Positions 59,569 to 63,998 of a stretch of 64,000 nucleotides of DNA are shown piece after piece (position 1 is the stretch's first letter; each line of letters opens with the position of its first letter). The notes beneath the pieces are model-generated. The model was not told the DNA's origin, did not search any database, and was given only the letters and a program-made list of their open reading frames with translations. The translations under genes were made by a program, and so were the position numbers. The DNA lies in the sequence record NC_010811.2; one strand, given 5' to 3'.

Positions 59569-59913
59569 TTAGTGGGTGTCCTTGGTGTCCAGCACCAGAC
59601 GCCCCGAATTCTTGCGTACCTGAATGGCCTTGTCGTCAAAGATCTGCACGCAGTGCCGATCCTTGATGCAGGTAATGGGCAACACCTGACCGAGGTGTTC
59701 GTGGCACCATGCCTCGATGGCCCTCACCTTTTCGGGCGACGATTCAGCAACTCGCGCAGTGAAGATGCGAACGTCACGGCCTTCCGTCAGCCAGCGCTGA
59801 ACGCGCTTCACCATGATGAGAATGGGCTTTCCAATGTGCGTGGGGCCACGGTACTTGTCGTAATACGCCAAGGTACCATCAAGGTCCACGCCAATCCAAC
59901 CGCGTTCGCTCAT
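59569..59913 (-). CDS. Small HAD-family phosphatase (subfamily IIIC-like)
   Basis: GVDLDGTLA, IFTAR, IFDDKAI. Confidence 0.75.
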   Translation of the reverse strand: MSERGWIGVDLDGTLAYYDKYRGPTHIGKPILIMVKRVQRWLTEGRDVRIFTARVAESSPEKVRAIEAWCHEHLGQVLPITCIKDRHCVQIFDDKAIQVRKNSGRLVLDTKDTH

Positions 59914-59971: not shown

Positions 59972-61063
59972 TTACTTGTGATGTGCGAGAAACGACAGCC
60001 AATCGCGCTCCGATCGCTTGTCGTAGCCGCGCAACCCCATGGCGTTGAGGTTCAGTCGCGGGAAGCGTCGCTTCATACACAGCGCACGATCCATGACCGC
60101 GGCAATGCTGTCAGACGACGTGGGATCCGCTTGGTACAGCATGTTGAGCCACGTGATCTCGCGGCTGCCGATCGTAGGCACGCCCAACACCACGGCGTCG
60201 GCCGCTACGATGTTGAACGTTTCCGAGAACGACACCTGCGTCACCAAGTCCATGGACGCCACAAGCTCTTTGAACTTGGCGTGCACCATCCACGGATGTT
60301 CGACCAGCTCGTGTTGCGGGTAGTGCTTGAACATCAGGCGCAGATTCTTGAGGATCTGATCGCCGTTCATCTCGATGCGACCGCCGTTGATGTGGAAGCG
60401 CAGGCGACGATTGAGCCGGGCTGCCAGCTTCAGCGCGCCAATCGCCTGTTCCATGTGGTTCTTCAACGGACGTACGGCACCAAAGCACCCGATGTCCAGC
60501 GTGTCGCAGTGGTCCGGCTTCATCTCTCCGTCAACGAGATGCGTTGTCGGATAGTAGTTGGGCAGGTATGCGACCTTGGAGGCGATGTGTTCTGGCGTCC
60601 ACGAGGGGTTCGCCATCTGCACTAGATGCAGGGTTTCCTCGTACATGCGCGGGCTATTGGCCGACATGACGACATTGGGACGCTGCACGTACTTCAGCAT
60701 CCAGTCGAAGGCGATCCCTTCCTGGGCTAGGAATGGAGTCTCCGAGTGATTGCGGATCACATACTTGATCTTGGGGTTGACCGACAGCAGCTCGTCGAAT
60801 TTCTCCGGCACAACCCAGAAGGCTTCAACGATCACTACCTCAGCCTGGAAGGCCATCGCTTCCCGGTAGATCGTCGAATTGTCTTGCACGTGAACCAGCT
60901 TCACTGGCACGCCGTGTTGCATCAGCATGTCGACAACCATGCGAGCGCTATTGAACAGGCCGCTGCTCAGCGGCTTCTTGCCGTCGCTGTAGCACCAGCT
61001 ATTGATGTCGTTGTAGTCGCTATCGCGATACTTGAGGACGAAGAGGGTGCGTGGGTACGTCAT
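59972..61063 (-). CDS. GT-B fold (GT4-like) glycosyltransferase
   Basis: FGAVRPLKNH and SFSETFNIVAADAVVLGVPTIGS motifs. Confidence 0.75.
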   Translation of the reverse strand: MTYPRTLFVLKYRDSDYNDINSWCYSDGKKPLSSGLFNSARMVVDMLMQHGVPVKLVHVQDNSTIYREAMAFQAEVVIVEAFWVVPEKFDELLSVNPKIKYVIRNHSETPFLAQEGIAFDWMLKYVQRPNVVMSANSPRMYEETLHLVQMANPSWTPEHIASKVAYLPNYYPTTHLVDGEMKPDHCDTLDIGCFGAVRPLKNHMEQAIGALKLAARLNRRLRFHINGGRIEMNGDQILKNLRLMFKHYPQHELVEHPWMVHAKFKELVASMDLVTQVSFSETFNIVAADAVVLGVPTIGSREITWLNMLYQADPTSSDSIAAVMDRALCMKRRFPRLNLNAMGLRGYDKRSERDWLSFLAHHK

Positions 61064-61128: not shown

Positions 61129-61863
61129 TCAGGGGTGGTAGTTGAGGAGCGACCAATAGTCGGCAGCATTGCCAATGTCCAGCACCACCTTGTTGGAGTA
61201 GCGAGTAACGTCGGCACCCAGACACTTGAGCGCGGGTCCGCCGCTGTACAACACGAGAGGCGCGTCCAATCCGATGATGTGTTCCACGGCCTCGTCCAGC
61301 TGACGCCAGTTGTTGAGCTCGAAGTAGTGCACACGCACGCCCAGCACATCACGGCAGCGAATCTGGAGTGCGTCGGCCAAGCCGCGTGACGCGTGCAGGA
61401 AGATGAGGGACCCCGCCGTCTTGTACAGTTCGGCCTGCGCCTGCTGCGTCCACACGTTGACGAAGAAGTTGTCAACGTACTGCTCGCGCGGACGGAACAG
61501 GTCATGAACGCTGTAGTACGGCTGCGTGATGCCCGAGATGTTGGGCGCGAAATAGTCGCTGTCGTTACCAGCGGACAACAGGCGGCGATGGAGTTCGCCG
61601 TAGGTGATGCCTTCGATGCCCATGCGCTTGCGCCACGCTTCGTCGTAGTCAGAGACCATGGAGTCTGCGGCACGCCACCGTTTAGAGGCATCGGCACAGG
61701 ATTCCATCAACTGACGTTCACCATCGCCCATGCGAGCGACGCTCAGTGATCGGTTGTTGATCAGCGCGTCACCCACCAGATAGTAGAAGGCCCATGCACT
61801 CATGGTGCGATTGGCAATGTCGACGGCACGTTCAGACAGCGAGGATAGGACCATTCCGGACAT
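61129..61863 (-). CDS. Putative GT-D fold glycosyltransferase-like protein
   Basis: RMGDGE near the N-terminus and C-terminal LYSGGPALK..VVLDIGNAAD, typical of GT-D-like domains. Confidence 0.55.
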   Translation of the reverse strand: MSGMVLSSLSERAVDIANRTMSAWAFYYLVGDALINNRSLSVARMGDGERQLMESCADASKRWRAADSMVSDYDEAWRKRMGIEGITYGELHRRLLSAGNDSDYFAPNISGITQPYYSVHDLFRPREQYVDNFFVNVWTQQAQAELYKTAGSLIFLHASRGLADALQIRCRDVLGVRVHYFELNNWRQLDEAVEHIIGLDAPLVLYSGGPALKCLGADVTRYSNKVVLDIGNAADYWSLLNYHP

Positions 61864-61880: not shown

Positions 61881-61911
61881 AAAAAGAAAGGGGACCCAAT
61901 GAGGGTCCCCT
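61881..61911 (-). terminator. Intrinsic terminator downstream of the tRNA cluster and Zn-finger gene
   Basis: AGGGGACCC-loop-GGGTCCCCT with TTCTTTTT on the - strand. Confidence 0.75.
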
Positions 61912-61912
61912 G

Positions 61913-62158
61913 TTATGCGCGTGACTGCAGTTCGAGGACAGTGTCGTCGTCTGCAAACTGATCGAAGTAATGGTACTCAGGGCACCGAAGTGAGTAATGC
62001 CCGCCGCAGGAATCACACGCGGCTTCGCAGATGCGCCAGTCTTCCACAGGGTGGAACTTGTCGCATTCTGGACATTTCAGATCGTGCTCGGTGAGTGTCG
62101 GTGGACCATCCAGTAATGGACCGTGATCCTGAATGAAATCGTACACGGTAATGGTCAT
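61913..62158 (-). CDS. Small Cys-rich Zn-finger protein
   Basis: CPEC, CEAACDSC, CPEYH; SD GAGGTG; start at ATG 62158. Confidence 0.6.
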   Translation of the reverse strand: MTITVYDFIQDHGPLLDGPPTLTEHDLKCPECDKFHPVEDWRICEAACDSCGGHYSLRCPEYHYFDQFADDDTVLELQSRA

Positions 62159-62174
62159 AGACACCTCGGTGTTA

Positions 62175-62293
62175 TGGAGTCGCGCCCCGAATCGAACGGG
62201 ATGGGATGTAGCTGAATTCAACCAGACCAACGTGCGGCCGCACGCCTACACCTCTTATGTATTCATACCAGCAGCCTACTGGACTCACGCGAC
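62175..62293 (-). ncRNA. 119-nt tRNA-like RNA with acceptor stem, T-arm and CCA but an expanded branched core
   Basis: 5' GTCGCGT pairs with GCGCGAC-T-CCA; T-arm CCCG-TTCGATT-CGGG; no canonical anticodon arm. Confidence 0.55.
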
Positions 62294-62300
62294 AAAGACT

Positions 62301-62376
62301 TGGAGCGGGCGACGAGACTCGAACTCGCGACATCTTGCTTGGAAGGCAAGAACTCTACCAACTGAGCTACGCCCGC
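62301..62376 (-). tRNA. trnG: tRNA-Gly (anticodon UCC)
   Basis: Full 76-nt cloverleaf: GCGGGCG stem, anticodon loop CTTCCAA, TTCGAGT T-loop, encoded CCA. Confidence 0.95.
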
Positions 62377-62389
62377 AGAAACTGAAACA

Positions 62390-62459
62390 ACTCCCTTAGT
62401 GGGTTCGAACCACTGCCTGCCCCCGTCGGGACCGCTCTACCACTCTAAGCTAAAGGGAA
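62390..62459 (-). ncRNA. tRNA-like element with the anticodon loop reduced to a 4-nt loop and no encoded CCA
   Basis: Intact acceptor (TTCCCTT/AAGGGAG), D-arm (GCTT-AGAGTGGTA-GAGC) and T-arm (AGTGG-TTCGAAC-CCACT); anticodon arm GTCCC-GACG-GGGGC. Confidence 0.65.
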
Positions 62460-62528
62460 TTGAGTTTGCTCACCAGCATGGAGAAGGTGCGCACAGTGCA
62501 CCCCCTTGGTCCATACACGGCTTGCAGA

Positions 62529-62606
62529 TGGTCCGAGTGAGAGGATTCGAACCTCCGACCCCCTGATCCCAAATCAGGTGCGCTAACCAGACTGCGCTAC
62601 ACTCGG
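62529..62606 (-). tRNA. trnP: tRNA-Pro (anticodon UGG)
   Basis: Full 78-nt cloverleaf: CCGAGTG/CACTCGG stem, anticodon loop TTTGGGA, encoded CCA. Confidence 0.95.
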
Positions 62607-62613
62607 TAAACAG

Positions 62614-63000
62614 TTAGACCGCCAACGACGATCTATGAAAAGCGATGTGCCTGAACACTGGCAACTCTAGCGTCGGCGGGTTGATGGGTAGTCCCCAAGC
62701 TTCCAGCAGTGGATGAAACGTTGAGTCGATCCAGCCTTCGGCAACCACAGAATCGGAATTTGTGGACAGCGTAGGTAGCGGGCGCGCAGTTCGTCTGTAG
62801 TAGACAGACTTATCGACAGCGCCACGCTCATGGGGCAAGCGTTCAACCAAGTTGAGTTCTACGCCTAGTCGCAGCGCCAAACGCACTTGGTACACGTTGG
62901 ACCCAAGCATGGACACTAGGTCCAATGCCGCGACCTTTTCAAATTGCTCAGCCGCCTTCAGAATCTCGATCTGCTGGCGAGTCAGGGTAATCTCTGGCAT
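62614..63000 (-). CDS. Hypothetical protein, possible winged helix
   Basis: LTRQQIEIL..DLVSML..VRLAL..LVER..YYR pattern. Confidence 0.5.
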   Translation of the reverse strand: MPEITLTRQQIEILKAAEQFEKVAALDLVSMLGSNVYQVRLALRLGVELNLVERLPHERGAVDKSVYYRRTARPLPTLSTNSDSVVAEGWIDSTFHPLLEAWGLPINPPTLELPVFRHIAFHRSSLAV

Positions 63001-63695: not shown

Positions 63696-63998
63696 TTAGT
63701 CAAGAAATACGGCGTGGCCGTCTTGAATCCAGCCATGCCACAGACCACCAGCCGAACCGTCGATCGACGGATGGACGGTGATGTTGTCGAATGTGGCTGC
63801 GTCAGGATCAGGACTGCACAACCACGTGATGTTGGAATACGCGTCGCCTGTAACGCCTTGGACTCGCGTCCAGCCGTGTTCAGGATTCTTACCCTCGGCG
63901 ATCTGCAAATCGGCCAACGCCGCAGTGAACAGCGCGTGCTGCTCACGCCAGCCAACAGACTGGAACATGCACGACTGATAGAAGCTCTTGTCGGGCAT
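63696..63998 (-). CDS. Hypothetical protein, DUF6527-like C-terminus (possibly 5'-truncated)
   Basis: TFDNITVHPSID..WHGWIQDG motif; runs to the window edge. Confidence 0.45.
   Translation of the reverse strand: MPDKSFYQSCMFQSVGWREQHALFTAALADLQIAEGKNPEHGWTRVQGVTGDAYSNITWLCSPDPDAATFDNITVHPSIDGSAGGLWHGWIQDGHAVFLD

Follow-up and report, generated by a model that had tools for sequence, protein, structure and literature searches.

What is a tRNA-like sequence without an anticodon loop doing between two ordinary tRNA genes of a phage? The question is raised by phiRSL1, a 231-kb jumbo myovirus of Ralstonia (NC_010811.2 / AB366653.2) whose host is a plant pathogen. I analysed a stretch of 64,000 nucleotides of this genome, which is called the window below. 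Positions are window coordinates, and the record coordinate is obtained by adding 124000. All genes surrounding the short-loop element (the element, hereafter) lie on the minus strand, and in the direction of transcription (5′ to 3′) they are arranged as follows.

62614-63000, minus strand: ORF262, an orphan of 128 aa from ATG 63000, which stops 8 nt before tRNA-Pro
62529-62606, minus strand: tRNA-Pro (TGG), the upstream neighbour, 68.6 bits with the Rfam tRNA model, CCA encoded
62461-62528, minus strand: a 68-nt spacer forming a long imperfect hairpin (-29.8 kcal/mol, z -2.7)
62390-62459, minus strand: the short-loop tRNA-like gene, 70 nt, found by ARAGORN and by the Rfam tRNA model
62301-62376, minus strand: tRNA-Gly (TCC), the downstream neighbour, 13 nt after the element, 69.7 bits, CCA encoded
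62175-62293, minus strand: a second tRNA-like element directly after tRNA-Gly, with no Rfam match and no ARAGORN call
ATG 62158 to 61916, minus strand: ORF260, a small zinc-ribbon-like ORF with GAGG before the ATG
61889-61911, minus strand: a strong intrinsic terminator, the end of the transcription unit

Since ORF262 ends 8 nt upstream of tRNA-Pro, the tRNA block lies within a same-strand gene string. The start of ORF262 at ATG 63000 is possible and would overlap the annotated ORF263. Equally good folding of the spacer was obtained in only 3 of 200 shuffled sequences, and from its predicted hairpin the spacer could be a candidate processing site or another remnant. The second tRNA-like element has a 7-bp acceptor-like closing stem and an interior of about 85 nt folded into hairpins, one of which is a perfect GC palindrome with a 4-nt loop. 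It ends in a T arm with a canonical T loop and a stem of only 4 bp, followed by T and CCA. ORF260 is annotated at 61913-62230 (minus strand), and the annotated start at 62230 intrudes into this second element. Judging from the GAGG upstream of it, ATG 62158 is more plausibly the true start. The homologues of ORF260 are weak and short only. The record also places ORF261 at 62212-62385 on the opposite (plus) strand, across tRNA-Gly; it is probably not a real gene. Farther away on the minus strand, ORF257 (59572-59913) has a weak PHROG match to polynucleotide kinase/phosphatase-type proteins, while ORF258 (59975-61063) and ORF259 (61132-61863) are glycosyltransferase-like, below the Pfam thresholds. 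ORF265 (63699-63998, minus strand) matches DUF6527/BubE, and the same family is found upstream of the tRNA arrays of three related contigs (L017, L257, and L262).

The GenBank record annotates only tRNA-Gly ('RSL1_RNA1') and tRNA-Pro ('RSL1_RNA3') here, leaving the element unannotated. A review table credits phiRSL1 with three tRNAs (PMC5348500). From the two labels and this count, the depositors apparently saw an 'RNA2' and omitted it.

The element is a true tRNA homologue. A preliminary description made from the letters alone had reported intact acceptor, D, and T arms with the conserved GG and TTCGAAC, an anticodon arm reading GTCCC-GACG-GGGGC, the lack of an encoded CCA, and a location between two normal tRNA genes. 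The three arms were confirmed to the base on the minus strand, as was the 5-bp anticodon stem with its GACG loop. TGT follows the discriminator T, whereas both flanking tRNAs, a tRNA-Pro (TGG) and a tRNA-Gly (TCC), encode CCA. The parts of the element are as follows.

62453-62459, minus strand: acceptor 5′ strand, pairing with 62391-62397 in 7 bp, the first pair being a U-G wobble
62434-62450, minus strand: D arm with a 4-bp stem and a 9-nt loop containing A14, G18 G19, and A21
62419-62432, minus strand: anticodon-arm remnant with a 5-bp stem (GTCCC/GGGGC) and the loop GACG at 62424-62427
62398-62414, minus strand: T arm with a 5-bp stem and the loop TTCGAAC
62391-62397, minus strand: acceptor 3′ strand, with the discriminator T at 62390, after which TGT follows (to 62387)

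U8 and A9 precede the D stem, G26 follows it, and a 4-nt variable region ends with C48. All of the 21 stem pairs are standard or G-U, and every conserved base of the D loop, the T loop, and the core is present. The tertiary network is thus complete (U8-A14, G15-C48, G18/G19 with the T loop, G26-A44, and G53-C61). The covariance-model check that had been suggested gave 37.3 bits (E 4.3e-7) against a gathering score of 29, over model positions 1-71, with 4 bases at the expected 7-base loop. This value comes from a 91-nt slice searched with laxer filters; a search of 1.2 kb missed the element owing to the speed filters. It is about half the score of the flanking tRNAs (68.6 and 69.7 bits). ARAGORN reports a 'tRNA-???' with a two-base anticodon, while RNAfold and the covariance model both choose the 5-bp stem with the 4-nt loop. 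The element lacks the canonical 7-base anticodon loop with U33 and purine 37, and it has neither G3-U70 nor a long variable arm. At E<=10, it has no match to the Rfam models of MEN-beta (RF01684), YrlA (RF02553), or tmRNA, and no tmRNA was called by ARAGORN. The earlier view of it as non-decoding holds, since a 4-base loop cannot present an anticodon while the remaining L-shape is intact.

Where does the short loop come from? The sequence GACG contains no U, and no single contiguous 3-nt deletion of a canonical loop having U33 and purine 37 gives it. Thus, no standard tRNA could have given rise to it in fewer than two mutational events. The best identity of the element was 70% in a comparison with 68 tRNAs (66 of relatives and the two phiRSL1 neighbours). 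The mean best identity across isotypes among the compared tRNAs is 77%. Since the element falls below this cross-isotype level, no parent isotype can be named. A tRNA-Ile of a Stenotrophomonas phage was considered as the parent and rejected; its 75% match is confined to the D and T arms.

Is the element found in other phages? When the element and its two flanking ORFs were used as queries against the phage collection (blastn and tblastn), phiRSL1 itself was the only match, and protein and DNA-pattern searches of IMG/VR gave the same outcome. Among 5.8 billion proteins, no homologue of ORF262 was found. The acceptor-stem pattern had zero matches in 185,579 species-representative genomes. A metagenome scan with a gap of 48-64, which covers normal-loop or longer forms (the element itself needs 46), listed one match, a chance one in a coding region. 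No close relative of phiRSL1 is present in the phage, IMG/VR, genome, or protein collections searched.

Distant relatives were reached by two routes. DNA polymerase I, at about 50% identity, led to BcepSauron, BcepSaruman, BCSR5, Motura, and one IMG/VR contig. The other route was the GT-D-like ORF259, which lies shortly downstream of the tRNA block and has 92 homologues, the closest at 60% and 56% identity. Two Logan contigs (SRR16915471 and SRR16915459) with a GT-D gene at 60% identity to ORF259 are the nearest leads, and in one of them the 787 nt upstream of this gene have no called genes. Where contigs share the order GT-D ... helicase ... PolA, a large tRNA array lies a few kb upstream. 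The fetched stretches contain at least 9 tRNAs in BcepSauron, 15 in L016, 10 in L017, 15 in L018, 14 in L019, 12 in L257, 6 in L262, and 4 in L260, each of these counts being a minimum. In contrast to the at least 4 to 15 tRNAs of the relatives, phiRSL1 has two intact tRNAs. Thus, its cluster is a reduced one, a setting in which relics are expected.

I performed a cloverleaf scan in which the acceptor, D, and T arms must pair and the stretch between the D and T stems is left free. Such scans see only damage in the anticodon region, so its frequency relative to other kinds of damage is not given by them. In the loci of the phiRSL1 group, the scan found 44 canonical tRNAs and 3 elements with a short loop of 3-4 nt. 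As a control, 20 shuffles of about 345 kb (the window and 11 related loci) gave 1 match; the matches are far beyond chance expectation. Besides phiRSL1, short-loop elements were found in two lineages. The BcepSauron element (L011 26031-26100; record 121030-121099) has a 5-bp stem with a 3-nt loop, encodes CCA, and is unannotated. It lies 9 nt downstream of a thioredoxin-domain gene. Structured non-coding DNA of about 230 nt comes after it, and then a terminator. With the Rfam tRNA model on a small slice, this element scores 40.3 bits with the loop region collapsed. The near-identical copy in BcepSaruman (L136, about 612-681) differs by one base, which changes a G-U pair of the capped stem to G-C. 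The other element (L016 435-502) belongs to a metagenomic phage (JGI contig Ga0395900_0000045, 231,605 nt), where it lies within a 15-tRNA array and is flanked by tRNA-Ser and tRNA-Tyr. It has a 5-bp stem with a 4-nt loop (GTTA), lacks CCA, and scores 43.0 bits on a small slice.

Neither the BcepSauron nor the L016 element was called by ARAGORN, and both are unlisted in an Rfam search of the loci at the gathering threshold. Even at E<=1, an Rfam search of the BcepSauron region missed its short-loop element. Between the D stem and the T stem there are 19 nt in phiRSL1, 19 nt in L016, and 21 nt in BcepSauron, against a canonical 22-23. The D stem GCTT is common only to the phiRSL1 and Sauron elements among all tRNAs listed, which is a weak hint, at the level of sequence, of common descent. 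Otherwise, the elements of phiRSL1, BcepSauron, and L016 have different, fully paired stems with no clear sequence orthology. The three may thus be independent losses.

Is the short loop confined to these jumbo phages? A loop-capped kind was defined by fully paired arms (a 7-bp acceptor, a D arm containing GG, and a T arm whose loop is canonical), together with a 4-7-bp stem carrying a 3-5-nt loop within a D-to-T stretch of 15-21 nt. The phiRSL1 element has both the paired arms and the capped stem. The scans of the collections looked for one common D-arm type with a T arm following too closely, and all counts from them are lower bounds. In IMG/VR, at least 116 loci were found, at least 83 of which pass the arm-pairing test with a shortened anticodon region; at least 37 loci lie within 500 nt of another tRNA. 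One viral family (in the range L021-L135) has at least 43 loci (for example, L024 272-339 and L030 5619-5688), on contigs of about 40-46 kb. Its 16 distinct sequences all agree at 40 of the 49 positions outside the anticodon/variable region but at only 3 of the 18 inside. By these counts of invariant positions, the tRNA body of the family is conserved and the decoding part is free. One member resembles a near-normal tRNA-Val. Most of the 35 further distinct viral sequences listed combine a stem of 4-7 bp with a loop of 3-5 nt, and CCA is encoded in 2 of the 35 only. Among the viral matches listed, 1 of 13 tetraloops is of the GNRA or UUCG type, which is no enrichment, and the loci listed on viral contigs have no neighbour gene in common as a partner.

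In prokaryotic genomes, the same scan found at least 120 loci with at least 27 cloverleafs. The loop is 3-5 nt long in 23 of the 24 hairpin-forming examples among the matches listed, and 8 of the 11 tetraloops among them are GNRA or UUCG (p 3.5e-10). A protein with an SPFH/Band 7 domain adjoins 13 of the 27 prokaryotic cloverleafs among the matches listed (L149, L151, L155, L173, L186, L198, L201, L209, L215, L239, L251, L253, and L254). These proteins form one homologous family of about 470 residues (approximately 465-530 aa) with a C-terminal domain, and the element mostly lies just upstream on the same strand. The taxa belong to very different phyla, from Planctomycetota to cyanobacteria. 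PADLOC has no model for the protein family. The window, the related phage loci, and the viral loci all lack an SPFH homologue. The phiRSL1 element is thus outside the prokaryotic subset, having neither a GNRA or UUCG cap (its cap is GACG) nor an SPFH gene in the window. Two Halorientalis genomes (L139 and L180) have related cloverleafs with the anticodon stem capped by UUCG, so the loop-capped kind extends beyond bacteria and phages. No description of loop-capped tRNA look-alikes, nor of their pairing with an SPFH protein, was found in a literature search. On the evidence of these scans, loop-capped tRNA look-alikes are a recurrent kind, and by their caps and neighbours the cellular ones are a selected RNA with a likely protein partner.

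What, then, is the element of phiRSL1? I consider it a retained, processed, non-decoding tRNA-like RNA, with a probability of about 0.5. It would be a member of the recurrent loop-capped kind, kept for its tRNA body, rather than a fresh accident. RNase P, the 3′-trimming nucleases, and the CCA-adding enzyme recognise the acceptor/T helix and the elbow, not the anticodon. Since the maturation enzymes ignore the anticodon, the RNA should be excised from the transcript like the neighbouring tRNAs, and CCA may be added to it. Codon pairing would be impossible. The signals for anticodon-independent synthetases (G3-U70 and a long variable arm) would also be missing, so far as the acceptor stem and the variable region predict. 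The most likely role would be a folding and processing module of the polycistronic transcript. The by-product would be stable and tRNA-shaped, invisible to translation and to loop-reading enzymes; anticodon nucleases would find no loop on it, and RelA no pairing with a codon.

The retained RNA is put first because the parts that are kept serve processing and the parts that are lost serve translation. It is also favoured by the contrast between at least two events in the loop and zero stem mismatches and zero lost tertiary nucleotides elsewhere, and by the short loops of BcepSauron/Saruman and L016 together with the wide recurrence. On the other side, this reading is weakened by the absence of a phiRSL1 orthologue from the collections searched, by the shrinking cluster, by the CCA missing here and present in both neighbours, and by a cap that is not of the stable GNRA/UUCG type. 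Furthermore, a processing role may be redundant, since the tRNAs 13 and 69 nt away already provide RNase P sites.

The strong rival, ranking second and with a substantial chance of being correct, is a neutral relic. The element would be an ordinary tRNA pseudogene in a vanishing cluster, transcribed and perhaps passively cut out with no use of its own. The larger arrays of the relatives with the GT-D/PolA neighbourhood fit this well, as do the second aberrant tRNA-like element in the next gene block, the halved model score, the missing CCA, and the depositors' decision to give no gene annotation to what they apparently noticed. Dead tRNA pieces do occur in this phage group, since a 3′ tRNA fragment at L017 6617-6672 has a T arm that equals the element's exactly over 18 nt. 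Nevertheless, the damage in a pseudogene should be spread over the molecule. Here it is confined to a 7-nt loop with at least two events, while all 21 pairs and all tertiary-contact nucleotides are intact, and pairing is perfect even though the best identity (70%) is below the cross-isotype mean (77%). Neutral decay also has to account for the identical type of defect in two other lineages and widely elsewhere. The preliminary description had preferred selection over decay on the ground that all stems are kept. That preference gains from the other lineages and from the wide recurrence and loses from the reduced cluster of phiRSL1, which favours decay; it stands in part only.

The preliminary description had also proposed a decoy. 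The RNA would distract an anticodon nuclease, a synthetase, or RelA, as an enemy or sensor that binds tRNA. To this I add a variant in which it would mimic a protein-partnered host tRNA-like RNA. A loop-specific nuclease could not cut the capped loop, and about half of the listed prokaryotic capped elements adjoin the SPFH family, whose partner RNAs a phage could imitate. However, what PrrC/RloC-type nucleases and RelA require is the anticodon loop or codon pairing, exactly the part that is missing here. As a decoy for anticodon nucleases or RelA, the proposal is therefore unsupported. Phage tRNAs are documented as counter-measures to tRNA-cleaving defences (PMC10264068, PMC11555353, and PMC11464382), which speaks for the general idea, but these are decoding-competent tRNAs and not mimics. 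No RNA-repair or tRNA-targeting gene adjoins the element, the neighbours being orphans and two glycosyltransferase-like genes, and a mimic is at odds with the lack of an SPFH homologue noted above. Altogether, a decoy or mimic is unlikely. Still less probable is a sequencing or assembly error hiding a true loop of 7 nt. Two GenBank records and the IMG/VR entry do all go back to a single deposited sequence. Filling one contiguous gap of 3 nt would still leave U33 and purine 37 missing, however, the CCA is absent too, and comparable elements exist in independently sequenced phages. The ARAGORN call, taken at its word, would make the element a working tRNA with a 6-nt loop and a two-base anticodon. 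This requires a 4-bp stem and a loop without U33, against the structure that RNAfold and the covariance model both prefer, and no natural decoding tRNA with such a loop is known. I regard it as the least credible explanation.

A broader reading would place the retained RNA of phiRSL1 in a widespread, undescribed RNA class of phages, bacteria, and haloarchaea, having a full tRNA body with a capped stem, or in sister elements a long insert, in place of the loop. The cellular members would work with the SPFH protein. In the phage members, the tRNA body would serve as a scaffold that processes itself and gives stability, or else it would copy the host RNA. I offer this only tentatively.

Is there a known RNA of this sort? 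The nearest objects are the phage tRNA pseudogenes that tRNAscan-SE and ARAGORN report with low scores or as 'undetermined'. They resemble the element in homology, cluster location, lack of decoding, and lack of annotation. They differ in that the damage of the element is confined to the loop, the stems and tertiary contacts are kept, and the pattern recurs. The mammalian mascRNA (MEN-beta, RF01684) is a cloverleaf with a small non-decoding loop within a longer, non-coding transcript, and resembles the element in its loop and its setting. RNase P and RNase Z release it, CCA is added, and it is not charged. A maturation of this kind is proposed above for the element. It differs in belonging to another domain of life, and its model, silent on phiRSL1 at E<=10, gave 11.4 bits for the L016 element against a threshold of 42.5. 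Murid gammaherpesvirus 68, an animal virus, also encodes tRNA look-alikes, which are cited in PMC6409571. These undergo processing and CCA addition but no aminoacylation. They differ in being transcribed by pol III, and no sequence relation to the element is expected. YrlA (RF02553) and tmRNA keep the tRNA elbow and the acceptor/T part without an anticodon, as the element does, but are much larger RNAs with other domains.

Some cellular and phage RNAs are more distant. Species 1 and 2 of the T4 tRNA cluster are stable non-tRNA RNAs that are co-transcribed and co-processed with the phage tRNAs. As they are usually described, they are longer and have no capped cloverleaf, and so are closer to the second element at 62175-62293. 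The 'tRNA-Other' of Bacillus cereus is a chromosomal pseudo-tRNA that is regulatory rather than decoding; it has an anticodon loop and is poorly charged. It resembles the element as a tRNA-like gene with a function beyond decoding and, by this description, differs in having the loop.

Phage tRNAs are now mainly viewed as a supplement for codon use or as substitutes for those that host defences have cleaved. A tRNA body kept without an anticodon matches neither view. If such look-alikes are maintained, phages and cells would use the tRNA fold beyond decoding, for transcript processing, RNA stabilisation, or protein binding. A class of RNA genes would then be concealed by annotation pipelines that overlook the look-alikes or dismiss them as pseudogenes. 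Even if the element is no more than a relic, it records and dates how the tRNA cluster of the phiRSL1 lineage shrank.

Other unusual tRNA-like sequences were observed in the related phages. The gap upstream of the GT-D-like gene (L017 9081-10000, L018 9264-10000, L019 9382-10000, and L007 3150-3800) has two conserved elements, each ending in a T arm and an acceptor-like strand. CCA follows in 5 of the 8 copies, and none was called by any tool. One of the two starts with a D arm of the tRNA-Leu type, and its D and T arms lie more than 100 nt apart. The second tRNA-like element of phiRSL1 sits at the corresponding position. In an odd tRNA gene at L257 5087-5207, the anticodon arm is replaced by about 70 nt that contain a second T-arm-like hairpin. 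At L017 7258-7336, a tRNA-Met-like gene has a 9-nt loop, and a tRNA-Gly at L016 1327-1414 has an insert of about 15 nt and lacks CCA.
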